64,000 nucleotides of DNA from Chlorokybus atmophyticus (lineage: Eukaryota; Plantae; Mesostigma and Chlorokybus algae). Where the stretch lies: positions 763,267 through 827,266 of the forward strand of contig RHPI01001116.1 of NCBI GenBank assembly GCA_009103225.1, given 5' to 3'. Made by a program: the position numbers and the translations under genes. Positions 27,678 to 53,300 of the stretch are shown here, one piece after another. Below the pieces are notes generated by a model. That model saw only the letters and a program-made list of their open reading frames with translations, searched no databases and had not been told where the DNA came from. Each line of letters starts with the position of its first letter. Within the stretch, counting starts at the first letter, position 1.

Positions 27678-29993
27678 GGTGGGAAGAGATAAGGGTGAGA
27701 GCTAAGGTGCTTGGTGATGGTTTATCTGGTCTGGTTAGGGGAGTGGCAGCCCTAGTGCTTGGTCTTGCTTACTGGTCATCTGCAAGAAGAAACAACGCTT
27801 GTGGAACTGAAGAGTGACTAGCAAGTGGGTCTGATGCTGACTGTGTGCGTTTATGTGCATTTGTGTGCATTTGATTTTGTTTCAGTGCCAGAATAATACC
27901 GATTGGCATATAGACTTGACACTCGCATTGTGCGTGAGGAATACTGCGGACCAGATTGCAAAGTGTTCTCAATAAGCCGACAACGCAAACAAACAAACAC
28001 CTCAATGCAGCCTTTGCTGAGGACGTTATGTGTAGTACACTTGACGCATGCACGCTCAGCAGGCAATGCGACCCCTTAGTCAGCAGCCTCATTCAATGTC
28101 TAACCTCCTGTCGACTCCTCCTTGATTCTTTCTCAAACCACAATACCCAACCCAACCCAAGTGCTGCGCCTCTGTTTCACCTGCTGCCGCCGCTACCACT
28201 GCTGTCGCTGTCCAGCCATCACTGGCTTCAATGACATACCGGTAGCAATCCACTCCACCGCGTAAACTACTTACTCACCCCTGAGCATCATCCTCAGCAT
28301 CAGCAGCGGCTGCGTCGTTGTTGTTGTCGTCCTTGCCGCCGCCCGCTGGCTTGCGTGGCAGGCGCCAGGCGGACGCTAACGCTAGTCTCGACAGCTTTGC
28401 ACGTTAGCAAGGCCTGGCTGGTTTGTCAACGTCGACGACTTGACCAATCTGCAAAGTCTGAATCCGGTGGGTACTTACCGAGATCAGAGGAATTGTATTA
28501 AGAAACTGAAAGCGTTTGTTTCATGCTATTATGCACAACTGGCGTGTGTCGGTCATTGGGCGGAGCGCGGGTCAGCACTTCATAGTAATATACTTTTAAA
28601 GATTGACGTCGTCATGACCCTACTGTTCGAGTAGGCCTTTTGTTTTAATAGGCCTACCGTTCCATTCGTTCGCGCATGCGCATGGCATGCCTGTCGCATA
28701 CGACAAGCCTGACTGGAATCTTCATCATGACTTTTGTGTCGATTCATGATTGGGTAGTCCCCTTTGAAGGAGGCCCCTTCGCTGACCAAGCGCGTGGCGG
28801 TGCGCGTGCGTTCCTTTGCCTTGCTTGGTCCCGCCAGTCAGCCTGCCGCCTAGTGGCTTGGCAAGCAGCTTTGCATGTCGTGTTGAAGGAGGCCTTTACA
28901 ACATCATGACGGCCTGTTGCTTCATCACGCAAGGTATAAAGTATAAGTCGTGTGTGGTAACACAATGGAGCAGTCACTGCGCACAACAAGCTCAACAAGC
29001 ATACAGTAGGTAAACTTGGCCAGCGCACTTTGATTACAAGCATATAGTAGGTAAACTTGGCCAGCGCACTTTAATTACAATAGGGACTTTACAAAGATAT
29101 GTGCTCTATGTGCACTATGTGCTAGTAGTAAATGCAAATAGAGCGGGGCAATAGGCAGCAATGGCAAGTAATAAGTGCGTATCAGCCAACAAACTCTTGA
29201 CTTTACATACTTGCTATAATGTTGCTTTGTTCCCACCTGATTTGCCTTTCTTGTTGCTTGTTGTGCTTTGGCGACAGGCACCGTTAGAGGCCACTCATTG
29301 TGCATCTGCTTGCAGCTTTACAAAGTCATAAGGAAACTTTATGCTACCGCTACACTAGTGCTCTATGTTCGTGCAGTGCGGTGTGTGGCCAGGCAGCAAG
29401 GATTTTGTATAACTGACCTGTGGACCAGCGAGGGACAGCAACCGGTACGTTGGTCCGCTTGTTAACGCATTTCCTTGCTGCTATACTCTGCCGGGTGGAG
29501 TATGGCAGCAAAGATTGCGCAGTGCATTGCAGTGAAATGCATCACTACACGATTAGTGCTGTGTAGGATGCAAAGCCCCCCGGCCCACTGGCACTCCCGC
29601 ACCAGCTGGCAGTCTTTATTGCGGCTGTAGGATAATGGTCTTTTATTGCATCAATCCAAAACTTGCGACTGCCGCAGTCGCAAGTCTTAGATTGCATAAG
29701 ATTGAATCTTATACAGCCCACTGCCCATGCAACAGTTGTGTCACTCGCAGGCATGCACGTCTATAACGATTGTAACGATTATGTGCAAAAAAAGACAAAA
29801 GACCAAGACTTACATACACAATTGCAATGCGCATGCACAATATAACTTTGCTTGACAGCATCTTTCATGCCTATCCATGAGTCATTATTATATCATTGCT
29901 ATATTATTTTAAAATCGATTGTAACCTGTCATTTGCTTTGTAATTAAAGTGCGTTTATTAGCTCTTTCATGAGATCCTTATGTTCAAGGGGGT

Positions 29994-30498
29994 TGTCACG
30001 AATTGGGATAAATTGTGACAGACCTCACTCATGGTGTCTTTTACTACCATAGCCTAGTGGTCGGGCCCCGATTGTTACAATGGTAACGGAGCTTGACGTC
30101 TCAGGTTCAATTCCCGTAGGGGACTGAGGCAGATCCAAGGCAAAAACAATAACATTTGGGGCGGCTTGCCCTAGGCTGGGCGCGGGATCACGACCTGCGC
30201 ACCGAGCCAGTTTAACCAAAGGCCGCGTGAGCGGTCGCGCGGCGATGGCAGGTCGCGCGGTGAGGGTGGCCGATCGGTCGGTCAGGACCGTTCATGGGCC
30301 GGATCCAACAGGCCGCGGGCACACCGATCGTGTTACGGCCGCAAACACGGCGACGTGGGCTAGTGCCTCATTGGATTATGAGGAACTCATGGGTTAAATT
30401 GGGGAGGAATGTCACGAATTGGGATAAATTGTGACAGACCTCACTCATGGTAGTGTCTTTTACTACCATAGCCTAGTGGTCGGGCCCCGATTGTTACA
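29994..30498 (+). mobile_element. TRIM (terminal-repeat retrotransposon in miniature), copy 1, complete with TSD
   Basis: LTRs at 29994-30079 and 30410-30498 (TGTCAC...GTTACA). PBS-like TGGTAACGGAGC follows the 5' LTR and PPT GGGGAGGAA precedes the 3' LTR. TSD GGGGT at 29989-29993 and 30499-30503. No coding capacity evident. Confidence 0.92.
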
Positions 30499-32524
30499 GG
30501 GGTAGTGAAAACTTTTAATATTATTCATCTTTGTTTTAAAGACTTAAATGTAGATAATGTAAATGCAATATGTAATACATTACACAACAGTTATAACACT
30601 AAAATACATACCGATAATGGCGGTCATAATTTTTAACACTTGCAACACTTATCTTTATATTAATGTCATGCATAAAGCTTCAACGTTTATCGTAAAAAGG
30701 ACAATGTTTTCGACATTATCAATACAATTATCACATGCATATAATTGAGTCGCACTTGTTATATTGACGTTGCTGACACCGATAGTGCCAAACAGCGGCA
30801 CTTTCTCATCAATGCAAACATTACCGTAGTGCCACGAAATCTTTGTAAAATAATCAATTTGGCAAAGGTACTATACGAAACCTGTGCTGTTTTTGAATGG
30901 CCGAGTTTATGCATCCATGACTTTAAACTAGAATGCATAGGTTAATGGGGTTTTAACGAATATTAATGAAAATTTTGTCGGCGCCTTTTATGAAGATTTC
31001 ACTACAGTAACAATGGTGATAGCATTGCATTCACTCACTATCTCTATTGTTTGCAATGGCGTAACCAGTGCCAAACCATTTGTGATAGTGCAAACCTTGC
31101 TATTGAAGTGCAGTGTTACCTCACGACCGCTATCAATGACAATGCACCATCTGCAATGTTGTAACGCCACTCGCTGTCGCTGTGCAATTGCATGAATCCA
31201 CATGCTCTGCGTTATTGTGATTGTGTCGCCATAGCGCATAGCCCGTGTGGGCAGGTAATTGACCACCAACAAGCATGTGTACTGCGTAGGCAGCTACGCA
31301 TGCTAGCATGTCATTGCATACACACTTTGTTGCATCATGCTGTTATGACGCATGCATGCATGCACTCATGCTAACTTCAGCACCATGCATACTCACCAAC
31401 ACATTACATTCAACACCGTCAGGCTATGTGGTACTTCTAACTTCATTACTTTAACATGCAACCCACAGCAGCAGACACTGTAGTAGTAGTACCTGCCACA
31501 CGCCCGCACGTGTGCATGTTTAGCGGGGAGGTTGAGAATAGTGCATCAAGATCTAAGACACTAATAGTTTGGGTGTGAATGAACAGTGTGTGTAGCCCGT
31601 GGTGGTGTATACAAACATGCTTGCATACGGTATGAGGTAACATGCACAAACAATTAACTAGTCAATCACACACATGACAACGGCAACCAAAACTTTTGAC
31701 CGGGGGGTGTAGTTTGTAAGCCAACCAACTAGCTCAACCACTAGCCTATGTGCGTGTGTGCAAATTCAGTGGGTAGCAAGGAGATGGCAAGGATAGTGTG
31801 GCAACCTGCAGCAGCCGAGGAGCGAGGAGAAAGGGTGTTGAGTGTGGGCGTGTATGGCGCTTGTGACAGCCTGAGGTGCAATGTGTGCAGCGTGCTGTGC
31901 GTGCGTGCTGGTGCAGCGCGACAACCCCGACAACCCCCGCGCCTACCGCCCCCACCTCACCGCCCAACTCTGCCACAACAACCACAACAACGACACACTG
32001 CGCCAGTCACAGTGACGCGATTAGGATTGGGTTTGTAGCCGTTAGTGCACATTGGTCAGCCCATCATCACAGATTGTGTTAACCGCAGATTTGCCAGCAG
32101 CACCGTCACTCACTCACACAAAATGCCATAGTCCATCACAACATGCATGTCTATGCATGTTGTGATGGACTATGCAGCAGCAAGTATCAGTGAGCAAGGT
32201 GGCATGCATGCTGATGCATATGTTGTTTTGTGTGTCATGCGCGTCTACCACCGCGCGCATATCCTGTATACAACAATGCCACACATGCGAAGCATGTATG
32301 ATACAACACCCCGTACACATGCGAACATCATACAAAAAAGTGCCGGAAGGCAACGTGCCAAGTATGCCGCGCGCACGCATGTACACATCATTGTCAACTT
32401 GTACAATAATGCATTGACAAAGTGGTGAAGCACTTATTTCATGCTGCCTGAGCATGCATGCACACACAATCATCAAGGACATCAAGGACAAGGCAGCAAG
32501 GCGCAATCAGATACCCTCAACACA

Positions 32525-32806
32525 AGCAACCACGGCGGTGTACATATATACACATATATATATGTATATATGTATACATATACTATATATATATGGTATA
32601 TGTATATATAACATGATATATAGATATATATATATATATATCATATATAACCACATATATATATATCGTGTATATATATACATGTACGATATGTATATAT
32701 ATATGTGTATACGATATATGTATATATATATACGTATTCGATATATATATATATACGGATTCGATATATATATACGTATACATATATATACATACATATA
32801 TATATA
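32525..32806. repeat. Degenerate (TA)n/(TACA)n low-complexity tract
   Basis: TATATA/TACATA runs. The Y/I-rich ORFs here are artefacts. Confidence 0.95.
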
Positions 32807-33261
32807 CAGTCTACCCTCGCTGTAATCACGCTCTTTCCTATGACATCCTCCCAGTAGTGACAATTTTTAAGCGAACCGATGTACATGTGGCAAAGTTCAA
32901 CCTTTTTAGTGACTATCACACTCGCTGCAAGGACCAATGGCGCCAGTAGGGAGCGTCATTATAAAGAGGGTATACATGATGGACTTCATTGATTGGGGTT
33001 TGCAATTTTGTAGGTGCAACGATTGGTGCAAAGCTTGCACCAACATTGCAAGCCACAACTAACCGCTGTCTCCATATAGTAACCAGCTGTCACTGCATAG
33101 CAAATATCAAATGTATAAATACCTCGCTACAATGACATTATGTTATTACAACGAGGTAATGCGGTCTAGTGACCACTGTTTTTACATCGAGGTAGTGACA
33201 TCCTCTATGTAGTGACAATTACGCTCAAAACATACGTGGTCACTACATTGAGGGTAGACTG
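32807..33261. mobile_element. Tc1/mariner-type MITE inserted in a TA microsatellite
   Basis: TIRs CAGTCTACCCTC (32807-32818) and GAGGGTAGACTG (33250-33261), each flanked by TA. Internal repeated GTAGTGACAATT motif. No ORF. Confidence 0.8.
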
Positions 33262-33668
33262 TATACGATATATATATACAAATATACATATATATATCGT
33301 ATGTATATGTAGTATTATATTGATGTTATAGTATAACAATGGTCTGATTGTCACTGCTCTGCAGCTGCGCACGAGCATGAGCGGGCGCTGGCGCTGGAGC
33401 GGGCGCTGGCGCTAGAGTTAACAGTCACTTGCTGTTGCTAATGTTGTTGCTCATGTTGTTGCTGAAGTTGTTAACTATGTAAGGCTTTGGGTAGGACGTC
33501 TGCAAATGTGTATTGTGACGTTGTATAGCTTTAGGTAGGGCATCTGCAAGTGTGTATAATTATGTGAGGTTCAACCATGCTGTTTGGAGTTTGAATGCCA
33601 AATCACAGCGCTATGAGCATGATCAATTGATAGTGTTAATCTTGGCACAATGGCATTATCTTTACGCC

Positions 33669-33965
33669 CATGCCAGCACTGGCACAAGAAGACCATGTGC
33701 CAGTGCTGGCATGCATGTGGTTCGGGTTTTGTGTTTTTAATACTTTTTTTCTTTAACTAGTACTGGCACAACTCGGCCGTGCCAGCTCTGACTCCATTTT
33801 CGGCATGCCAGCACTAGCACAACACTACTTGTGCCAGAGACCAATTTATGAATTAGCGACCGGTGCTGGCACAAGCGGTTTTGTGCCAGTTTTAAATGGT
33901 TTGGAGCCTAGGCCCGAAAACCCCGTGCCAGTACTGGCACAAACAGTTTGTGCCAGTACTGGCAC
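33669..33965. repeat. Cluster of (G)TGCCAG(T/C)ACTGGCAC palindromic motifs
   Basis: 18-bp stem CATGCCAGCACTGGCACA/TGTGCCAGTGCTGGCATG (33669-33713). The perfect palindrome GTGCCAGTACTGGCAC occurs twice at ~33924-33965, with further half-sites in between. Confidence 0.8.
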
Positions 33966-33974
33966 GGCCTGCAG

Positions 33975-34547
33975 GACCCATGTGTATATCATATATATAT
34001 ATATAGTATGTATATGTAGTATTATATATATGTGATATATATATATATACATCTCATATATATACATATATCGTATATATATGTATATATATATGCATAT
34101 ACACGCATATATACATATATACATGTACATATACATATCTATAAATGATATACGTATACATATACACATATATACATACATATATATACATATACATATA
34201 CATATATATATGATATATATAGATATATCGATATCGTATATATATTTATAGTATATATATTTATAGTATATATATATACATACACGTATATATATATGTA
34301 TATACATATATTTATATATATATACACATATACAGGTATATATATACATATATATATACTTGTACACATATATTTACACATATATGTATATATGTATATA
34401 TATACATGTACACATATATTTACATATATATGTATACATGTATGCGTGTGCGTGCGTGCGCGTGCACGCGCATGTGTGTGTGTGGCAACAAAGCCAAGAC
34501 TACGCATGTGCAAGCTACGTAAATATGTGTGCGTGTGTGTGCGTGTA

Positions 34548-34641
<94 letters not shown>

Positions 34642-34652
34642 CGTGCGTGTGA

Positions 34653-34684
<32 letters not shown>

Positions 34685-34720
34685 GTGCGCGCGTGTGTGT
34701 GTGTGGCAACAAAGCCAAAA
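33975..34720. repeat. TA-rich low-complexity tract followed by (GT)n/(GCGT)n microsatellites
   Basis: Direct inspection. Pure GT run at ~34551-34632. A duplicated GTGTGGCAACAAAGCCAA.A.TACGCATGTGCAAGCTA segment occurs near 34478 and 34700. Confidence 0.95.
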
Positions 34721-34772
34721 ATACGCATGTGCAAGCTACTTAGATAAGTGACTGCACAAATGACCAACTAAG

Positions 34773-39982: not shown

Positions 39983-40275
39983 ATGTCCGCTATGTACAAT
40001 GTATCATACAGTGTATGGGTGCATGTTCCTTTGGTGCAACGGATTCAGCCAACATTGATAAGCGACATACAACTTGAGCACATCTTGCACTGACTATGCA
40101 TGCGCGTAAGGCTTGCAACTACTAGCAACTTCGGCTATGTCCGCTATGTACAATGTACCATACAGTGTATGGGTGCATGTTCTTTTGGTGCAACGGAGTT
40201 AGCCAACATTGTTAAGCAACATACAACTTGAGTACATCTTGCAATGACTGTGCATGCGTGTAAGGCTTGCGACTA
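39983..40275. repeat. Tandem duplication, period 154 bp
   Basis: ATGTCCGCTATGTACAATGTA.CATACAGTGTATGGGTGCATGTTC...AAGGCTTGC.ACTA starts at 39983 and at 40137. Confidence 0.9.
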
Positions 40276-41890: not shown

Positions 41891-42690
41891 CTACACTGCC
41901 GCAGCTGCCAGCACAGCGTCCGCTTTCGCTGTTGGCGCCGCCGTCTGGACCGGACCCCAGCCTGGTACTGCCGCTACGATTGCCGCCCCCCGCTCCAGGA
42001 TGGTGATGCCCTGGGCGCGCTGCAGCGCGCATGACACGCGCTGCCGGTACAGAGCCAAGTAGCCCACTAGCCTGCGCAATTACAGGTCACGTGCAGCCAG
42101 TGCCCTCCTAGCGCATGTGTCGATGACGTCGTGAAAACTCTGGCCCAGGGTGCCGTGCGTCTCGGCGGCGAGGGGATGGAAAGTGTCGGCGGCGGGGTGA
42201 TCGTTGTATTTCCGCCGCTTCGCCTGTTCCGCCGCCTTCGCTGCACCTCCCGGTTGCTCGCATGCGGTGATTGTGACATCCGAGAGCATGCGCGTATCTC
42301 GACCGGGTTTAGAGGCCACCAAGTCCACCCGCCTCCCCCTCGTCTCACCCGGCAGTATCGGCATAAAACCGCTCTGCTCCCTACTGACCGAAAACTCTGC
42401 GTCACGCATCACACCATATACCTCATCGCGCAACGCGTCATGCGTTGCCGTGCGGCACCTCCCCAAGGGGCAGCGGAGTAGGTGCGCGCCCTCGCCCGTG
42501 AGCGGCCCCCCGCATAAGCAGTGCTCGACGTTGACCAACAGTGGGTGCGGTAGTCCTAGCAGCGTCCTGAGCGCGGTCCGGAAGATGTCGGCGGAAATGC
42601 GTAGTGCCGGGAAAAATGGCAAGGCCGACAGCCATGTGCCAGCACCGACACCCGAAGCTGATTGGCGCCGCGCCCTGTCGGTGATAGTCG
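41891..42690 (-). mobile_element. 3' fragment of an RLE-type (CRE/R2-like) non-LTR retrotransposon
   Basis: GAGTWLSALP, IFRTALRTLLGLP, CCHC-like CLCGGPLTGEGAHLLRC, THDALRD, RRVDL...DVTI (PD-D-like), AEQAKRRKY, FHPLAAETHGTLG, RQRVSCALQRAQG. No RT domain is visible, consistent with 5' truncation. Confidence 0.8.
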
Positions 42691-43724
42691 CGGAGTGACA
42701 TTAACTGAACACATTTGCTGCTACTGAATGCTACTGTTTTTGGTGACCGTGGCAACATGCATGCGCAAACCCTGTTTGTAATTGTCTTCACCATAACAGC
42801 TGATGGTTTCAAACAAGTGTTGGACCCAGTTCGATAACATCACACAATCAATGCATGGCCTAGCAGTAACAGCGCATAGGTCTAGACACACGCCCATGTG
42901 GGCAGCCAAGGAGCTGGAGCTGGAGTCACCTTCCTTGCCCCGCCTGTAGGTGATTACCAACTGCATATTGACTGCTGCATGTCCAATGGGGTAGAGGCAG
43001 TAGATTAGCGTGCTAGTAGTAGCCCGGTGGTCAACTAATTGTCATTTGTACGACACCTTGCATGTGTTGCTGCGTGCTGACGGAACCACACGTTATGCAT
43101 GCGCATGCATGTCCTGCATTTGATGTACACTTGACATGCATGCAGTATGAGCTGAAATTACCTGCACATAACTTACGCATACATTGCGAACCAGCCATAG
43201 CCGGTGACATTGTTGTTGGAATGTCTAGCCTTTCTTGCTGTTTAGTACAAGTACAGTACGGTACAAGTACAATGGTGCAATATCACATGCACAATACTGC
43301 TGATCATTGATGCAAGCGGACATGCAAACTCGCATGCAAGTGAAATGGCAACAGCGGACACCGCAGAAGACACTACCACGACAGCCACAACACAGCGTTA
43401 AGGAGCTCGCGTTCAGGCCACGGTGAGAGTAAGAAGACCATCACACCATCACCATCAATACTCCCACGGACAGTGTACCAACTTCACAGCCATAAACATC
43501 CACGGAAGAGGAGTGCTAGGACGCTTGATGACCAATACAGCCTCAAAATGGTGGCTGCAAAACACAAAAGATCAATAAATAAAACACGACACATCGACAT
43601 ATCATTCCAACTACATGCTTCAAGCATACCAGTTCGTTATACTTCATGTGAACTTGCAGGCCAAAGGTCATTCCAATGCACTCCAGCATGCGCATCTGCC
43701 CCCTATCCAACTTGTCTTCAAAGA

Positions 43725-44228
43725 TGTCACGAATTGGGATGAATTGTGACAGACCTTACTCATGGTAGTGTCTTTTACTACCATAGCCTAGTGGTCGGGC
43801 CCCAATTGTTACAATGGTAACGGAGCTTGACGTCTAAGGTTCAATGCCCGTAGGGGACTGAGGCAGATCTAAGGCAAAAACAAAAACATTTGGGGCGGCT
43901 TGCCCTAGGCTGGGCGCGGGATCACGACCTGCGCGCCGAGCCAGTTCAACCTAAGGCCGCGTGAGCGGTCGCGCTGCCATGGCAGGTCGCGCGGTGAGGA
44001 TGGCCATTCGGTCAACACCGTTCATGGGCCGCATTCAACAGGCCGCGGGCAGACCAATCGTGGTACGGCCGCAAACACGGCGACGTGGGCTAGTGTCTCC
44101 TTGGATTATGAGGAACTCATGGGTTAAATTGGGGAGGAATGTCACGAATTGGGATAAATTGTGACAAACCTCACTCATGGTAGTGTCTTTTACGACCATA
44201 GCCTAGTGGTCGGGCCCCAACTGTTACA
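43725..44228 (+). mobile_element. TRIM, copy 2 (same family as 29994-30498), fused to a Gypsy LTR remnant
   Basis: LTRs at 43725-43813 and 44140-44228, with the same PBS, PPT and internal sequence as copy 1. Its own flanks (AAAGA / ATCTT) do not match. Confidence 0.92.
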
Positions 44229-45158
44229 ATCTTTCGCTCTGGCAGCTGCCCCGGCAGCGGCGGCGGCGGTGGCGTTGGCTGGCTAGTGGTGGTGTTGGGG
44301 TAGGGGATGAAAAGGGGGCGGTAGCACCCCTCCTCCTTACAGTTGGTATCGGAGCACGAGCGGCAAGGGGCCTGTGGGAGGGGCGGCGGCAGGCTGCAGG
44401 GGCGGCGGCAGGCGGCGGCAGGCGGCAGCGACGTTAAACTAGGGGTAGCTAAAGTGTTTTATGTTTTAACTATAATACTTAAACGCTGCTGCTGGTGCCT
44501 AGCCTAGCCTAGCCTAGCCTAGCTTGCCATGCCATGCATGCCATGCCTAGCCTAGCATGCCTGTCATAGTCTAGTTTGTTATTGTGTGAAGGGAGCCGGC
44601 CATTCATGCATATCCTGAAGCATTGCATTGCAGCACAACACATAGTAAACATACATTGATTGTATTATATTGTGTGTGTACCACCACGTGGATTCGTGGT
44701 GGTGTAAGGGTTTTTCTATTAATTTGGAAATTCCCTTGGGGGGGGGGCAGTTCGGTGGCAACATCGACTGTCTCAGTGCCGCCATTTTGTGCGGTGAGGC
44801 CGCCAGAATTTTTTGAGCGGCCGATATCAAACTCACCATTCACAACTGGTCGATATCGGCCTGTAAGGTCGATTTCACGAGATTTTGGCACCCTGTGTGT
44901 CAATCACAGTTGTGAATTGTGCTGGGTTGTACAAAGTGAAAACTTTGAGAAATCATAAATCGTGAACCGTCACGTGGATTCGCGCACGGTTTGTTGCAAA
45001 GTGAGTGTCTAGTTGAGAGGTGTGTGGAGAGCTCTTTTGGGGCTGTATACTCCACCGTAACGCCTCAAAACTTGACGAGACAAAATCATTAGATTTTGCA
45101 TGTATTGCAGTGCACAATCTGAGTACTTGTGCACTTGCTAACGGCTGTCTTTGGGCAG

Positions 45159-46622
45159 ATGTCTGACCAAGGAGAGGGAGGTGAGAAGTACTTTACCGTC
45201 CCTACCTCATCGTCATCATACGAACCATCAAGTGATGACAAAGTGAGAGACTCGGACACGAGTGAGAGCTACAAGCTCACTGAGAGTGACAAGGAGGAAG
45301 CTGCGCAGGATAGCGAAGCTTCTCCCGATCAATCTACTCAGAGTGGGCCAGCTACAATGGACACACAGCCTGTCATTGGTGGGGCTACTGAGAAGTATGC
45401 GCGAGAGCGCAAAGCCTTGATCGATGCTCACCCACAGCTTCGTCAGGAAGTGTGGGATGCATGGGCACTAAAGGTTCGTGATGGCTATGCAACAGATTTT
45501 GCCACTCTCCCTCGCGCAAGCAAGAAGATGGTGATCCGCATGATTGAGCACGAGTTGACGAACAATGTTCCGCCACTCGTGCGCGGTGATCCGAAGGTGG
45601 CTGCTCTGATGGCTGTTTACGATAGGCCGCTCCCATACGAAGGGAAGCGGATGGCGTTTGAGGCCTTGGCCAATTTTATGGTTGAAACGCAGCAGCGCTG
45701 CAAGGATGTGTTCTGGTTTTTGGGACCTGACTTGGAGAACAAGTTGGTTGCTCCAGTAAAATTGGAGGCACGCCTCGACTCGATGCAGGCGGAGTTGGTG
45801 GCGTTGCGCCAACAGGCGGCGGGTGCTACGTCATCGGTTGGTGCATCAGTGGGGCTGCCAGTTACGGCATTAAATAAACTGGAGAAGTTCAAGCCTAACG
45901 GCAGTGTGAACATCCACGACTGGGTAGTGACTGTTGAACATTATCTGACAGCACTAAAGCGCCCGGTGAGTGAGCACGTTGCGGTTGCTGAGTTGCTGAT
46001 GCCATCTGATGCTCTCGCCGAGTGGGCGAGACAGACAGAGAACGGTGCTGCCAAGACAGTCGAAGCACTGTTCCAGTTTCTGACGGAACGTTATGGTGGC
46101 ATGGATCCGGCTACTCAAGCTCGCAACAAGCTCATGAAGTTGCGACAGAATGGTCGGGCAGCTTCAGCCTATCTGCAGGAGTTTCAAGCGTTGGTGGGTC
46201 GTGCTAACAGCGGCCTCATGCCCATGGACAAGGCCGAGCAGTTTGAGTTGTACAAGCGCGGCTTGGATGCGCGTGTGCGCGATATGCTGCAATACAACAC
46301 TGTGACGGGGCTTCCTTGGGTTCCTAACAACTTGGCACAACTACAGAAGTTGAGCGTGTATCTGTTTAGTGATGACGCAACAGTGCAGGACAAGTCACAA
46401 GTGACAGAAACTGCCAAGTCGCAGGGGGTTGGAGGAAAGCGTTACTCTCAGCCAAGTGCGCATGTGGCGAAGAAAACAAAGATGTTCGCGCCTCGTACTG
46501 GTGCTACGTCTATTGGTGGTGCAGCTACTGCGGCTCGCACCTGTTTCATCTGTCATCGACCTGGCCATATCGCAAAGAACTGCCCGACCAAGGGGAAGGG
46601 CAAGGCCAAGAAGGTTGAATAG
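45159..46622 (+). CDS. gag: Retrotransposon Gag with CCHC zinc knuckle
   Basis: Intact ORF with capsid-like LEKFKPNGSVNIHDWVVTVEHYL, ARNKLMKLRQNGRAASAYLQEFQAL, and knuckle CFICHRPGHIAKNC. Confidence 0.88.
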   Translation: MSDQGEGGEKYFTVPTSSSSYEPSSDDKVRDSDTSESYKLTESDKEEAAQDSEASPDQSTQSGPATMDTQPVIGGATEKYARERKALIDAHPQLRQEVWDAWALKVRDGYATDFATLPRASKKMVIRMIEHELTNNVPPLVRGDPKVAALMAVYDRPLPYEGKRMAFEALANFMVETQQRCKDVFWFLGPDLENKLVAPVKLEARLDSMQAELVALRQQAAGATSSVGASVGLPVTALNKLEKFKPNGSVNIHDWVVTVEHYLTALKRPVSEHVAVAELLMPSDALAEWARQTENGAAKTVEALFQFLTERYGGMDPATQARNKLMKLRQNGRAASAYLQEFQALVGRANSGLMPMDKAEQFELYKRGLDARVRDMLQYNTVTGLPWVPNNLAQLQKLSVYLFSDDATVQDKSQVTETAKSQGVGGKRYSQPSAHVAKKTKMFAPRTGATSIGGAATAARTCFICHRPGHIAKNCPTKGKGKAKKVE

Positions 46623-46933
46623 GATTACGCCATGACTGATGTAGATGTGGTTGATAACCAGTTGCTTGTACTAGTAGCAAACTGGTTTGCTGAGCTGTCT
46701 CAGGTGCATGTAATGACACATGCATGGCAAGCACATAGCGAATTGCCGCTTTTTGATATTGAAAAAGTGGAAGAGAATGCTTGTGTGTTGGTACATGTTG
46801 AGTTTAACATGCTTACTGAAGTGCACACTTTAACTAAGCTGCAAAGTAAGCACAGAACCTTGAGTGTTGTGGTAATGGTGCCTATGAGTATAAGTATCAT
46901 GGCCTATGGTTAAAACACACTCGAGGGGGGACT

Positions 46934-49900
46934 GTGTTGAAGCAATTTAGCAAGCGTGAAACAGGGACAGTGCGATTGTCAGCAATATTGATCAACTCTT
47001 GCGTTAGTCACGGACTCTTGGCTACGTTTCAAGGACGGGTAGTACCTCGATTGTGGACATTTAAGGGTACAATGCAGGGGATTACTAGTTCGTTCTTGAT
47101 TGACACTGGTGCGACACACAACTTTGTTGAGGAACAATGGGTTGTTCGCAATAAATTATCGTGTAAACCCTCAGCATTTTCAGCTGCCGGCGCAGGGGGT
47201 GCGTTGCTAGTAAAAAGAGAAATAAAAATGAAGGTAAAGATTGGTAATTATCATGCCAACCTCACCTTCATAGTGGTGTCCATTAACATAACTGGTGTTG
47301 ATGTGGTGCTAGGACAGGAATGGCAGGATAATGTCAAAATGACATTGGATACTGGTGCACGATTGTGCACAGTGAAAAAGGGTCGTAAGCGTGTAACGCT
47401 GTCTGTGAGAGGGTCACATAGCTTGGAACAAGTGCAAGTTGATCCTGCGCTCCTGACTGCACTCCAAGTGAAGCGTGCTTTGCGTAAAAACAGACCAGCT
47501 TTCTTGGTGCACTTAACATCATCCGATGACTTTGTGCAAGGCAGCACGGAAGGTGTTGCAGACATCATTGAGAAGTATCAGGAGATATTCTCAGATGAGT
47601 TACCAGGCTTACCTCCTGATCGAGGTGTCGGGCACACAATACCTTTGATTCCTGATAGTGAGCCTCCATTTCGTCCTATATATAGGTTGAGCCCTCGTGA
47701 AAAGGGGGAAATGGAAACACAGACAAAGGAGTTACTGGAAAAGGGATTGATTGAACCAAGTTCTTCACCCTTTAGCGCACCCATCTTGTTTGTTATGAAA
47801 AAGAATGGGAAGTTACGCATGTGTGTAGATTATCGTGCTCTAAACAAAATCACGGTAAAGAATTGATACCCGTTGCCAAAGATTGATGATATGTTTGACA
47901 AGTTGTCGGGGAATGCGTACTTTAGTACGTTGGACTTGACAAGTGGATATCATTAAATCCGGATTCATCCTTCAAATGTCTATAAGACTGCAGTTAGAAA
48001 ACCAACGGGTCATTATCAATACAAAGTGTTACCTTTTGGATTGACTAATGCACCCGCCGTGTTTCAGAAGGAAATGAACGAAATATTTGATGATATGCTT
48101 GGCAAGCATGTCATGATTTACTTGGATGACATTATTGTCTTCAGTAAAATAAAGGATGAGCATAGGCAACACTTGGAAGCGGTGTTTGTAAGGTTGCGCA
48201 AACACCGTCTGTTTGCAATTCTCACAAAGTGTGATTTTTGCAAAATAGAGTTGCCTTTCCTTGGCCACATTGTGAGTGGTGCAGGCATCAAGCCTGACCC
48301 TCGCAAAGTGCAAATTGTGAAAGAATGGCCACAACCTAAAAATGTCCATCAACTAAGGTCGTTTCTAGGGTTGGCAAACTACTTTCGCAAGGTCATGATG
48401 GGGTACTCTACAGTTGTCATGCCTATGACCAAACTGTTGCGTAAAGATTCCCCGTTCACGTGGACGACAACACAAGAAGCTGCTATGCAACAAGTGAAGT
48501 TGGCTTTGACATCAGCACCGGTGTTAGCATTGCCAAATTGGGAAAAACACTTCACAGTGGTCAGTGACGCATCAACACTTGGGTGTGGTGCGGTACTATT
48601 GCAAGATGGCAGACCTTGTGCGTACGAGAGTAGGAAGTTCATTCCTGCAGAGGTGAACTATACTACGTCTGAGCAAGAACTATTGGGTATAGTTCATGCT
48701 CTTGAGACATGGAGATGTTACTTGGAGGGTGTTCAGTTCACTATTGTGACTGAAGGCACAACCCGTTGGTGTATTTCTCAACATAACAAAACTTGTCGAG
48801 ACGACAAGCGCGCTGGAATGAGTTTTTGTCCAGGTTTACCTTTGATTGGGTGTATCGGCCGGGCAGAACCAATGTGGCGGACCCTTTAAGTCGTTGCCCG
48901 TCATTATTGGCGGTGATGCGTGCGCAAATACTCGCAACACGCAGCACATTGTCTCCTGATGATAAGTTTGTGCAAGCTGTTGTACAGGGGTACACTTCGG
49001 ACCCATGGTTTTCGGTTGCAAAAAACTTACAAAAGCTTGACAAGCGGGACAATTTGTATTACATGAACAGCAGTTTGGCAATACCAAACCATGCTGATTT
49101 GCGCATGAAATGCATAACGGATGTTCACGATCCACCGTATGCTGGGCACTTTGGGGGTCGCAAGACTACCAAGGCAGCGCAACAGTTGTACTGGTGGCCA
49201 TCGTTGCCTGTTGACGTGAAGCGCTATGTTGACACGTGTGATAAATGTCAGCGTGACAAACCTTTACGTCAAAAACCCTTTGGGTTGCTGCGACCTTTGC
49301 CTGTTCCTGATGGCAAGTGGGAAAGTGTGAGTATGGATTCAATCACTGAGCTCTCTGAGACAGTGTTAGGACACACTGCGGTTGCAGTTTTTGTGGACCG
49401 TTTGACAAAAATGGTTCACATTGTCCCTTGTCGCACGCAATATGCTCCCGTGAATTAGCGATGGTTTTTGTCGCCTCTGTATTTAAGTTGCATAGCTTGC
49501 CTCGCAACTTTGTGTCTGATCGCGATCCGCGATTTGTGGCTCAATTCTGGAAGTCGCTATGCAGCTTCTTACATATTTAGCAGAATATGAGCACAGCTTA
49601 TCATCCACAAACGGATGGTCAAACAGAGCGCGTCAATCAAGTGATTAAAGAAAGCATTCGGCATTATGTGAGTCCGAACCAGTCTGATTGGGATATCTAT
49701 CTTCCAATGGCTGAGTTTGCGATTAACAATGCATGGCAAGAGAATGTGCAGGAAACTCCATTTCTCTTGAATTATGGAGTGCATCCAATGAGTCCTGCGA
49801 GTATTAAGTTGCCCGCTACCGACATAACTCGCGTACCTGCAGCACGCGAGATGGCTTCGGCCATGCAGGATATGTTAGCGTTGGCAAAGGCATGTCTGCG

Positions 49901-50396
49901 CGCAGCGCAAGACAGACAAAAAGCCCATGCTGATGCACATCGCAGAGAGGCCAACTACGATGTGGGCTGTTCAGTGCTTTTGCGCACTAAAAACATATCC
50001 ATCAAGGGAGTGGGTACCCGCAAGTTTTTCCCTCGCTGGATAGGCCCTTTCAAAGTGACTGATCGGGTCGGCACTCACGCGTATCGGTTGGACTTGCCAA
50101 AATCGATACGCATTCACAATGTGTTTCATGTGAGTGTACTGAAACCGTATCGTTCCGACGGTCGGGTTCAACCTCCTCCACCCCCGGTCGCAGTGGATGG
50201 CGACGATACTTTCGAGTATGAGGTGGAAGCAATCCTAAGTCACCGTAAGCCTCGACGCGGACGCGCGCTGTCTTACTTGGTGAAATGGAAAGGGTATGGT
50301 GTTAAACACAATACATGGGAGCCCGAAAGGAATCTTACCAACTGCCAAGAGATTCTTCGGGGGTACTGGAGTACTGTGTCCGCACGCGGACGGTAA
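46934..50396 (+). pseudogene. pol: Gypsy pol (protease, RT, RNase H, integrase, chromodomain), disrupted
   Basis: [57 protein letters not shown]...CDKC, WESVSMDSI, YHPQTDGQTERVN, YEVEAILSHR...YLVKWKGY...NTWEP. Premature stops at ~47864 and ~47952, and frameshifts near 48770 and 49455. Confidence 0.93.
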
Positions 50397-53300
50397 AAGG
50401 GTGCTTGCAGACATCTTTACCGCTTCGGCCCCGATTCTCTCGCTGCTTTTGTTTCGCAACTCGTGGTGGGGCTTTGCTAACCCTTTAACGAGGACATTGA
50501 ACCTAAGTGGGGGGGGGGGGGGGGGGGGGNGGGGGGGGGGGATGTAACGGTGTGCTACCTCCATAGAGGTTCCCCGCCCTTATTTAGGTTTAAATAAGGG
50601 TCCCAACGGGATTATGTAGCCTGTTAAGCCTTATTAAGGCCGTTAACCTAGTGTTAACGGCCTAATGCAATGTGACTTAACTGTGACACTGATATGGGCG
50701 TGAGACATGAGTCTCACGCCGATATCAGCCGCATGGCGGCACTGCTAACGCAGTGGCCGCCATAGCCAGAGCATCTTTTGCTCTGGCAGCTGCCCCGGCA
50801 GCGGCGGCGGCGGTGGCGGTGGCTGGCTGGTGGTGGTGTTGGGGTAGGGGATTAAGGGGGCGGTAGCACCCCTCCTCCTTACAAAAGATGTTGACAAGAT
50901 CGGTAGAGGGCTGACTGTCGGCATGTACTTAACCAGAGAGCAGCGAGTACTTGCTAGCGAGCCTGCAATACACAGTTTGGGATTAGATGAGACGGCAACA
51001 GTTGTGACAGCATATACACACACGCCCACGCGCCGTTTCACTTTTGCGTGCGAAAGAGGGGGAAGGGAGGAGCTGAGGATACTCTACCGTTTGGCACAAT
51101 TATCAAGTTTCTGTGGCTTCGGGTTGAGACCTGGCAGACAATTCGTGTGCTGGCAAAAACACTCCTTGAGGTAACGAACCTCAGGAAGGTTGGCAGCCAG
51201 AAGAGCTTTATAAAAAGCCGTTCTAGACAGCAGTCTGACCTTGGGGTTACTTGTCTCCATCTTTGCCTTCATCTGGTTCTCAAAATGCCCCGCCAAATGC
51301 ATATGTAAGCCACAACCTCGACACACTTCATGCTCATAAGAAGTACCTTGCAATCCTCTCTACCGACTGCATACGTAAGCCACGGCTACAACACACTTCA
51401 TGCTCAAGAGAAATACCTTGTAAACCTCTTGCTGCAAAGATGCCTTTCAATTTAAGAACCCGCAATTGAAGATCTTTGCAGGCGGTTGTTGCTTCCAACA
51501 GTTGATCACGAGTGATCCGCAGAATCTGTTGAAGAGCAGCAGAATGCCACCAGGCCTTTTCGGTTGACAATTGCATGGCCACAACCTGGTTCTTCTCAAA
51601 GCTTGCAAGCGCGGCCAACAACAGCTTCTCGGTAGCATCCAAGCTGCGTGCGTCACCATTACAAATGTCAACGAAAGCCGGTCTAAAGACCTCTTCGCGA
51701 GTCTCCTGCAAGCAACCACTCAGCCGTCACCAACAAGAACAAGCCAGTCACTATGTAGCAGCAATAGCAGTATCCACTGTGACATCTTAACTATATCACT
51801 TACTCTGCATGGAACCGTGGACAGTGACCGCATCCAGCCTGCTCACAACACAGACATTGGGTTACTAGCGTCAACATTATAATGAGGCATCAAGTGCCGT
51901 ATGTGTTGTCAGCGCACTTGTGTGTTTGCGACTATAGTTACGAAGGCAACGAGAGACAAAGCTGGAGGCAAGGTCGCAAGGAAGTTACGTCACACAGTAG
52001 GTATACTGTATTAGTAAAGTGTACTGCAGTAGAATATAATTTGATATGGTGAGAACGAGCTATAGTAACAATACACCGTCATCACAATGTGCTTTTCCCT
52101 TTCTCCCTCCTCACCTGGCAAGGCAACAGCGAGTGGCGTTGTGACCTCTGCGCGGAGCCTGCTGTTGTTGCCAGTACCTACAGCGTGCAGACGCCGCAAC
52201 AGCGGCAAGGCACGCAGCATTTCGCCTCCTCAACCAGCTAGCCCAAGCTCCACCAGCGCCTGCTCCTCTTATTCCTACTCCTACGCCGCCAAGGACAACA
52301 CTGGCAAGTTGCTCTGTTGGAACTGTTCTGCGAACAATAAAACAATCGAGGGTTAGGGTTTGTGGCGTCCAGTTGGACGCGCTGCTACTACAACTGCTAC
52401 AACCGTAAATAACTGTACACAGCTGCATTGCAACTGCCACGTACCATCGTGTACACTAGGGCAACGTGGGGCAATTGGCGGCACCGAACTTTGTCACTTA
52501 ACCAAAGGCGCAGCCAAGACCGGGAGCCGCTGAAAATTCTGTGCCTTTGTATGTGATGAGAAACCAGATCAGAGTTGCTGAGTTCAAAAAAGTTGAGTTG
52601 CGAAGTGAGCGTGTGACTAAGTGCTGGCAGGATAATACAAAAAGAATGCATCTGTAAGACAGATCTATGTACATTTACATACCAGTGTTGTTCAAGCTTA
52701 CTTCGTGTGACTTCATAGACATAGCCAAACCTTGAGACGCTGGCAACTCTGTCTATGACATTGTATGTGACGCAACCAGTGTGTGCTAGAGAGCTGAGCT
52801 TGCAGTGCTTGACCGTGCAAGTGAGTGCTGACAGTGCAATTTGCATGCATCTGAAAAACAAAGATTTGTGAGCGATTGTGTCTGGGCACATACCAGTATT
52901 GTTGGAGAGACACCACATGTGGTGGAAGGTACACGGCCCCAAGTATTCAGACGAAGGCAAGAAGGGTGGCTGCATTTTTGCTGCACGCGAGTTGATCCCT
53001 GAACACTTGTGCCCGCAATCCTGTCAAGCAGGCAAAAAAACCTCACGTCAAAGGTGATGAACTAGATATGCAATGCTTGCACTGAACATGTAGCAAAGCT
53101 TTACAAGTTTACCAGTAAAAGCTTACAAAGCCACAGCGGGAAGTAGACATCACGACACACAGGCATCACGGAATGAGCCAGACATTGCACATGCTATGGA
53201 TAAGTCAACAATTGCTTATTTGGTAAGGTAGATGAGAGTCAACCAGCTGCAGGTGGCAAGTCACGAGATGGTGGCTTGGGTGAGGAGACAGCCACGCCTG

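Follow-up and report, generated by a model that had tools for sequence, protein, structure and literature searches.

Complex LTR insertions formed before integration have been documented (Sabot & Schulman 2007, BMC Genomics 8:247; PMC1950507). In these complexes, two element bodies lie within one 5-bp TSD and are read as the product of a fused daughter cDNA that integrated once, an arrangement like that of the unit described here. Their parts belong to the same family, with three LTRs of which the middle one is common and the outer two are near-identical, and they are explained by template switching between RNAs in the R region. Chimeric and tandem TRIMs form a second related group, described from sugar beet (Mob DNA 2026, PMC13570524) and pear (Cassandra, PMC4079214); their LTRs were donated by other families, recombination or template switching has been invoked for their origin, and by description they are TRIM-TRIM hybrids. 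A third process is autointegration, known from Ty1 and from Arabidopsis SISYPHUS, in which integrase moves the CA end of a cDNA into retroelement cDNA inside the particle, the entry points being spread along the element. Plant VLPs contain such products in abundance (PMC7197481), and those known are circles formed within one molecule, which fail to integrate. Most TRIM families have no known autonomous partner, and the partners proposed so far rest on sequence similarity (bioRxiv 10.1101/010850).

The locus considered here lies in a 64-kb stretch of the Chlorokybus genome (the window), and its features are listed in Table 1. A unit of 7,159 bp (43725-50883) is flanked on both sides by AAAGA, and consists of a complete 504-bp TRIM directly followed by a chromovirus of the Gypsy group whose 5' LTR is missing its first 230 bp. 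The outer termini are base-perfect, TGTCAC... being contributed by the TRIM on the left and ...CTTACA by the chromovirus on the right. The sequence across the inner joint is GTTACAATCTTTYGCTCTGGCAGC, with an ambiguity of 1 nt, as A44229 can be read either as the LTR base or as the base of the TRIM U5-PBS spacer. The 24-mer spanning the joint occurs once in the window, where none is expected by chance. The TRIM lacks a separate TSD, since its left flank is AAAGA and its right flank ATCTT (44229-44233). The Gypsy element alone has none either, as no Gypsy left terminus is present in the window, and LTR positions 1-230 are absent from the window outside the 3' LTR. All coordinates in the preliminary description proved correct base for base, and direct reading and alignment bear out its account of a TRIM flanked by AAAGA and by an internal position of the Gypsy LTR (equivalent to 50773), of a 5' LTR reduced to positions 231-341, and of a single AAAGA bracketing two unrelated TG...CA ends.

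Table 1 Features of the composite unit and its flanks (positions within the window).
Feature	Position	Strand	Basis
Left TSD copy, AAAGA	43720..43724	+	direct reading; same as 50884-50888
TRIM 5' LTR, 89 bp, TGTCAC...GTTACA	43725..43813	+	direct repeat with 44140-44228
TRIM internal region, non-coding	43814..44139	+	sequence; no ORF of >=80 aa
TRIM putative PBS, TGGTAACGGAGC, 1 nt past LTR	43815..43826	+	matches Gypsy PBS at 11/12
TRIM purine tract, GGGGAGGAA, closing the internal region	44131-44139	+	sequence
TRIM 3' LTR, exact terminal ...GTTACA	44140..44228	+	direct repeat
Inner joint, TRIM terminal A / chromovirus LTR position 231	44228..44229	+	alignment to 3' LTR
Chromovirus 5' LTR remnant, LTR positions 231-341	44229..44341	+	aligns with 50773-50883
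Chromovirus putative PBS, TGGTATCGGAGC, 2 nt past LTR	44344..44355	+	sequence
gag ORF, open, Retrotrans_gag, CCHC zinc knuckle	45159..46622	+	Pfam, translation
Broken pol	46850..50396	+	Pfam, translation
Protease in pol	46850-47863	+	Pfam
C-terminal half of RT domain and RNase H	47957-48886	+	Pfam
Integrase zinc domain	48787-49455	+	Pfam
Integrase SH3 and chromodomain	49581-50393	+	Pfam
Polypurine tract, poly-G run	50508..50542	+	sequence; single 'n' at 50530
Full chromovirus 3' LTR, 341 bp, TGTAAC...CTTACA	50543..50883	+	sequence; ends ...CCTTACA
Right TSD copy, AAAGA	50884..50888	+	direct reading

As in an ordinary nested insertion, the exact end of one element is joined inside the LTR of another. 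Unlike ordinary nesting, however, the inner TSD is absent, only one part of the interrupted LTR is left, and the sole TSD brackets both elements. The unit agrees with the complexes of Sabot & Schulman in having one TSD around the whole, but differs from them in having unrelated outer LTRs, a truncated LTR and no common internal LTR, and in its joint, which is free of homology and placed at a complete TRIM end (alignments between the TRIM and Gypsy LTRs score no higher than shuffled sequences). Compared with the sugar beet and pear chimeras, a TRIM is here combined with an autonomous-type chromovirus, each supplying one outer terminus. Both complex LTR elements with a single TSD and chimeric TRIMs are thus known already, and the unit is a variant of them.

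The first element is assigned as a TRIM based on its two short direct LTRs (89 bp, differing at 5 of 89 positions), TG...CA ends, total length well below 1.5 kb, PBS, polypurine tract and lack of coding capacity. A second copy in the window (29994-30498, 93.5% identical) has GGGGT at both flanks, and this clean TSD fixes both the TRIM termini and the TSD length of 5 bp. Within the window the PBS motif is confined to the Gypsy element and the two TRIMs. Searches for a tRNA or Rfam match within the TRIM and for tRNA genes in the whole window gave none. The second element has the gag-protease-RT-RNase H-integrase order and C-terminal chromodomain of a chromovirus (Pfam matches to Retrotrans_gag, zf-CCHC, Asp_protease_2, RVT_1, RT_RNaseH_2, Integrase_H2C2, SH3_Tf2-1 and Chromo), although its frames are broken (pol shows three or more frame changes as well as in-frame stops) and the integrase catalytic core (rve) was not detected there by Pfam. 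Two complete LTRs and a TSD of its own are lacking. The 5' LTR remnant is 94.7% identical to the corresponding part of the 3' LTR, with 4 substitutions and one 2-bp indel over 113 positions. A shorter LTR starting near 50779 was also considered and rejected: no polypurine tract is found there, the homology runs 6 bp further left, and a poly-G tract stands immediately before TGTAACG at 50543. Protein searches with gag, whole and by region, returned no relatives, and no identical protein products are on record for two ORFs; for the RT/RNase H region the only relatives returned are from other algae and plants (at most 58% identity), the nearest being algal Gypsy RTs.

A TSD common to both outer ends makes entry as one molecule the most economical reading, and the unit was probably generated when integrase inserted a composite cDNA in a single event. 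This linear molecule would have had the TRIM U3 terminus at its left end and the chromovirus U5 terminus at its right end, and a staggered cut at AAAGA would have given the single 5-bp duplication. It could be argued that the two AAAGA copies match by chance and that the ends have separate histories, for instance through a larger rearrangement which removed everything to the left of a nested TRIM. The match is indeed of 5 bp only and many windows were examined. For a pre-specified pair of 5-mers, however, a chance match has a probability of about 1/1024, and the rearrangement must in addition end exactly at the first base of the TRIM. The reconstructed empty site (CTTGTCTTC-AAAGA-TGTTGACAAG) moreover forms a 6-bp inverted repeat with the TSD at its centre, and in this it resembles the other targets: each of the three integration targets found in the window is the centre of a short inverted repeat (a post hoc observation, n = 3). 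We therefore regard a fortuitous match as very improbable. A paralogous uninterrupted site (CTTGTCTTCAAAGATGTTGACAAG) was sought in the window, and none was found.

Another possibility is that two independent insertions used the same pentanucleotide (AAAGA-TRIM-AAAGA-Gypsy-AAAGA), after which the middle AAAGA and LTR positions 1-230 disappeared, through a real deletion or because a short-read assembler mis-threaded the TRIM to LTR position 231 via the junction of another nested locus. The nature of the assembly lends this some weight, provided that the window belongs to the published one. The published Chlorokybus genome is a short-read Illumina/BGI assembly scaffolded with mate pairs (PMC7027972), and the single 'n' at 50530, within the polypurine tract and thus inside the unit, marks an assembly join, leaving the unit's interior unverified. 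Among the listed contigs of two public runs over 43200-45200, which are short and cover a small share of this region, none bridges 44228|44229 or the left junction, and other copies of both the TRIM and the Gypsy LTR are present. Scans of metagenomes with the junction 24-mer and with an LTR-PBS 27-mer gave 0 matches each. On the other hand, this scenario demands base-exact reuse of a target by two elements, together with either one specific mis-threading or a deletion whose end point is exactly the terminus of the TRIM. The outer junctions carry unique flank sequence and hence were not invented by the assembler. Double use of one target, with the loss step in either form, is improbable. A contig from run X2, whose match begins exactly at 44229 and which continues leftward as canonical LTR (GCCATAGCCAGAGC), confirms where the breakpoint lies relative to intact copies of the LTR. 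The single-entry reading, drawn from one locus, is robust to most assembly errors.

The position of the inner joint bears on how the two cDNAs came together. The chromovirus 3' LTR folds into a hairpin array, in which the hairpin GCCAGAGCA/TCTTT/TGCTCTGGC (50765-50787, 9-bp stem) holds the equivalent of the joint (50772|50773). The joint thus lies at the apex of a palindrome in the LTR, and its TRIM side is the exact CA end. No TATA-like motif is found about 30 bp upstream of LTR position 231. The combination of exact CA end and palindrome apex fits integrase-type joining better than template switching, and a homology-driven switch was rejected, since TRIM/LTR scores equal those of shuffles and the only shared word, an 8-mer, lies elsewhere. 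Of the joining routes proposed in the preliminary description, the integrase-type one is hence retained and homology-driven template switching is without support.

The inner joint too, then, would most likely have been made by integrase, by transfer of the CA-3'OH from a completed TRIM cDNA to the tip of the hairpin in the chromovirus LTR. The version we tentatively prefer, at well below even chances, is a heterologous autointegration of TRIM cDNA into the cDNA of a helper chromovirus in one particle, in which the 230-bp LTR stub would drop out and chromosomal integration would use the two free ends that are left. While known autointegration products are intramolecular, the event proposed here would be intermolecular, involving two cDNAs and a product that then integrated; we found no genomic precedent for this route described in the literature. 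Somewhat less likely is a joint inherited from a nested progenitor copy, with aberrant reverse transcription of a read-through transcript started in the TRIM. A joint made without integrase, by an end-to-end template jump of RT or by cDNA end-joining, seems a rather poor candidate.

The same hairpin-apex position would suit any nesting made by integrase. The principal alternative is a conventional one, in which the chromovirus inserted at AAAGA, the TRIM later inserted into LTR positions 231-235 (TSD ATCTT), and LTR positions 1-235 were deleted in place. A 3-bp microhomology, TGT, occurs at exactly the points needed (TGTAAC at the Gypsy start, TGTCAC at the TRIM start), so that a conventional 235-bp deletion by illegitimate recombination reaches the same structure. 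Deletions flanked by microhomology are given as the accepted route of LTR-element decay (Devos et al. 2002, as cited in PMC1950507). Both end points must nevertheless hit element termini to the base, and by our estimate the required deletion is one among several thousand possible 3-bp-microhomology deletions per 1-kb region. The TRIM LTRs are also no less diverged (5 of 89 positions) than those of the Gypsy element (4 substitutions and 1 indel in 113, or about 5 of 113), which fits elements of the same age, although this test has little power. Nesting followed by deletion is, on balance, unlikely. With one locus only, and with a TGT microhomology that leaves the conventional route available, the idea that the cDNAs were joined and then integrated as one molecule is kept as the most economical reading of the TSD.

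It had also been proposed that this chromovirus is the autonomous partner of the TRIM. The cis signals are consistent with this: the PBSs are identical at 11 of 12 positions, the terminal hexamers agree at 5 of 6 positions at each end (TGTCAC and TGTAAC at the 5' ends, GTTACA and CTTACA at the 3' ends), and both have 5-bp TSDs. Given such similar ends and near-identical PBSs, the two elements could share one integrase and one primer tRNA. PBSs, terminal hexamers and 5-bp TSDs of this kind are common to many LTR elements, and the Gypsy copy at this locus is broken, so the partnership, as judged from the sequence, is suggestive only. If true, composite entry would be a different and more direct type of evidence for a partner, as both DNA copies would have shared an integration complex; in addition, it would widen the 'complex' class of LTR insertions from same-family to heterologous fusions, and make integrase-mediated joining of cDNAs a source of chimeric retroelements. 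Should such chimeras recur in Chlorokybus, they would offer direct physical evidence as to which TRIM is packaged by which autonomous element. At present the unit is one locus, old and degraded, in an assembly probably built from short reads; it offers a well-defined lead that is cheap to test. The element is now dead, with LTR divergence of about 4-5%, a broken pol and two unlike R regions; because the R regions of its two ends differ, canonical strand transfer is impossible.

Re-reading the sequence and aligning its parts bore out exactly the preliminary description of this stretch, in which a TRIM, a small non-coding LTR element, is joined to a Gypsy-type chromovirus inside one target site duplication (TSD). 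The TRIM has a short purine tract directly before its 3' LTR and no coding capacity, and is followed with zero gap by the truncated 5' LTR of the chromovirus. The body of the latter is ordered gag-protease-RT-RNase H-integrase-chromodomain, and its RT is closest to those of Gypsy elements from Closterium and from other algae and plants, with at most 58% identity. The first 230 bp of the chromovirus LTR occur only once within the window. The AAAGA before the TRIM (43720-43724) is identical to that after the chromovirus 3' LTR (50884-50888), and this sole duplication at the locus brackets both elements together.

Coordinates of the chimeric unit, the second TRIM copy and the inverted-repeat targets.
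Feature	Position	Description
TRIM	43725-44228	504 bp, TGTCAC...GTTACA, 89-bp direct LTRs
TRIM LTRs	43725-43813 + 44140-44228	89 bp each, direct repeats
TRIM PBS	1 base 3' of TRIM 5' LTR	TGGTAACGGAGC
Truncated chromovirus 5' LTR	44229-44341	113 bp, aligns with last 111 bp of 341-bp LTR 50543-50883
Chromovirus PBS	44344	TGGTATCGGAGC
Chromovirus 3' end	50543-50883 (LTR)	poly-G polypurine tract, then full 3' LTR, TGTAAC...CTTACA
Second TRIM copy	29994-30498	93.5% identical; same first and last bases; perfect TSD GGGGT/GGGGT
Inverted-repeat target, whole unit	43710-43724 + 50884-50898	6-bp arms
Inverted-repeat target, second TRIM	29983-29993 + 30499-30509	4-bp arms
Inverted-repeat target, chromovirus LTR	50765-50787	9-bp arms

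The terminal bases and duplication of the second TRIM copy fix the TRIM termini to the base and show that the family makes 5-bp TSDs. The chimeric copy is therefore truly without a TSD of its own (AAAGA on one side, ATCTT on the other), and the chromovirus is truly without a left terminus. The match of a contig from one of the public sequencing runs (X2) starts precisely at 44229; leftward the contig continues as GCCATAGCCAGAGC, which is canonical LTR sequence and places the inner breakpoint relative to intact LTR copies.

Since each outer junction (flank to TRIM on the left, LTR to flank on the right) contains unique flank sequence, the assembler cannot have invented them. If these junctions are real and the identity of the AAAGA pair is not due to chance (approximately 1/1024 for a pre-specified 5-mer pair), the integrated DNA had the TRIM U3 as its left end and the chromovirus U5 as its right end, a conclusion which is independent of the content between the ends. 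That the whole unit entered the chromosome in a single integration is, in our judgement, somewhat probable, and every alternative requires base-exact coincidences. Ordinary nesting of the TRIM at LTR positions 231-235, followed by a 235-bp deletion ending exactly on the first bases of both elements, is a real rival because the TGT start common to the two provides a 3-bp microhomology, but by our estimate this deletion would be one among several thousand equally microhomologous ones in the region, and we consider such a history unlikely. Two insertions at the identical pentanucleotide, combined with a deletion or with mis-threading of the assembly, appear more doubtful still, and it is highly improbable that the TSD match is due to chance and that a rearrangement stopped precisely on the first base of the TRIM.

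The inner joint (44228|44229) contains the complete TRIM 3' LTR, including the CA at its end. Only finished cDNA or an integrated copy has a right end with all of U3-R-U5, so template switching, offered as one option in the preliminary description, fails in its simple RNA-to-RNA form. The TRIM and the LTR share no homology at the joint, their local alignments scoring no better than shuffled sequence, and the only match is in the PBS (11/12). Within the LTR, which folds as a series of hairpins (MFE -180.9 kcal/mol, z = -9.2 against shuffles), the joint coincides with the apex of one with 9-bp arms, GCCAGAGCA-TCTTT-TGCTCTGGC. The hairpins are near-continuous and perfect along 50543-50883, for example at 50577-50600, 50637-50663, 50689-50728 and 50765-50787. 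In the chromosomal targets, both that of the whole unit (CTTGTC-TTC-AAAGA-TGTT-GACAAG) and that of the second TRIM (TTCA-AG-GGGGT-AG-TGAA), the insertion site is likewise the centre of an inverted repeat, which may reflect a target preference of the integrase; the background frequencies are 0.017 and 0.12, respectively, and 0.03 within the LTR for the LTR site, in a post hoc comparison of three sites. Read on the opposite strand, the hairpin loop TCTTT gives the TSD AAAGA, and the TSD site and the hairpin both contain the 7-mer AAAGATG, in opposite orientation (approximately 1% by chance, post hoc).

The TRIM CA end, the homology-free joint, its position at a hairpin apex and the inverted-repeat targets fit a joint made by integrase. 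Two routes to it remain. TRIM cDNA could have been transferred into chromovirus cDNA within a shared particle, after which the 230-bp stub would have been lost and the remaining ends integrated into the chromosome; plant VLPs contain abundant autointegration products (PMC7197481). In the other route, transcription of a nested progenitor copy would have started at the TRIM promoter and run through the chromovirus, and reverse transcription of this RNA would have involved several non-canonical steps. An RT end-jump or end-joining may also have produced the joint, since A44229 can be read in two ways, as LTR position 231 or, in an unprocessed TRIM end, as the spacer base between U5 and PBS.

The proposal that the chromovirus is the autonomous partner of the TRIM accords with the near-identical PBS, a motif found nowhere else in the window, with the similar terminal hexamers (TGTCAC/TGTAAC and GTTACA/CTTACA) and with the 5-bp TSDs made by both elements. 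Given these, a single integrase and a single primer tRNA could serve the two, but plant LTR elements commonly have features of this kind. A stronger argument for the partnership is the chimera itself, valid only if the single integration holds. Pre-integration fusions of LTR elements, each under a single TSD, have been described in Triticeae, rice and maize (PMC1950507); those complexes are of the same family, with three LTRs and homologous outer LTRs, whereas the Chlorokybus unit combines a TRIM and a chromovirus, each contributing one outer terminus. In sugar beet, chimeric TRIMs carry LTRs of other TRIM families (PMC13570524). In the literature we found no case in which a TRIM and an autonomous-type chromovirus are joined and each supplies one outer terminus.

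The LTRs of the chimeric TRIM differ at 5/89 positions, and in the overlapping 113 bp those of the chromovirus show 4 substitutions and one 2-bp indel. These comparable divergences indicate similar ages, the TRIM not being detectably younger, in a comparison of low power. The LTRs of the second TRIM copy are identical except for one 3-bp indel, making it much younger than the chimeric copy; the family was still active once the chimera existed. In-frame stops interrupt the chromovirus pol after 46619 and again between 47864 and 47956, its frame changes near 46850-46910, 48787-48886 and 49359-49580, and the integrase catalytic core was not recognised in it. With two different R regions, the unit could not have replicated canonically even when new.

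Contigs of public runs matching parts of the stretch are short and none bridges the junctions, protein searches yielded no sister copies, and metagenome scans gave 0 matches. A single "n" at 50530, in the poly-G polypurine tract (about 34 nt) just 5' of the 3' LTR, marks a join inside the unit. This is typical of a scaffold join without detected overlap, and the link from the Gypsy body to the 3' LTR thus rests on pairing information. For the published Chlorokybus genome, Illumina/BGI short reads were assembled and scaffolded with mate pairs (PMC7027972). Contigs of X1 and X2 (both public runs) from other Gypsy leader copies skip 44401-44680, which contains CTAGC/CATGC microsatellite-like repeats, and 45037-45150 (280 and 114 bp), so the leader of the chimeric copy differs from its relatives by indels.

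To the left of the unit, an ORF of 180 aa on the minus strand (42080-42622) carries a Cys/His-rich motif (HCLCGG...RCPLGRC); it resembles the C-terminal portion of a non-LTR retrotransposon ORF2 and suggests a TE-rich, apparently non-coding neighbourhood. Short tandem duplications are found at 51293-51429, 39983-40275 and 657-898 (units of approximately 70, 154 and 121 bp, 81-94% identity), one of them lying 400 bp beyond the right end of the chimera. A long microsatellite block of the (TA)n/(TG)n/(GCGT)n type (32500-34750) lies between the two TRIM copies.
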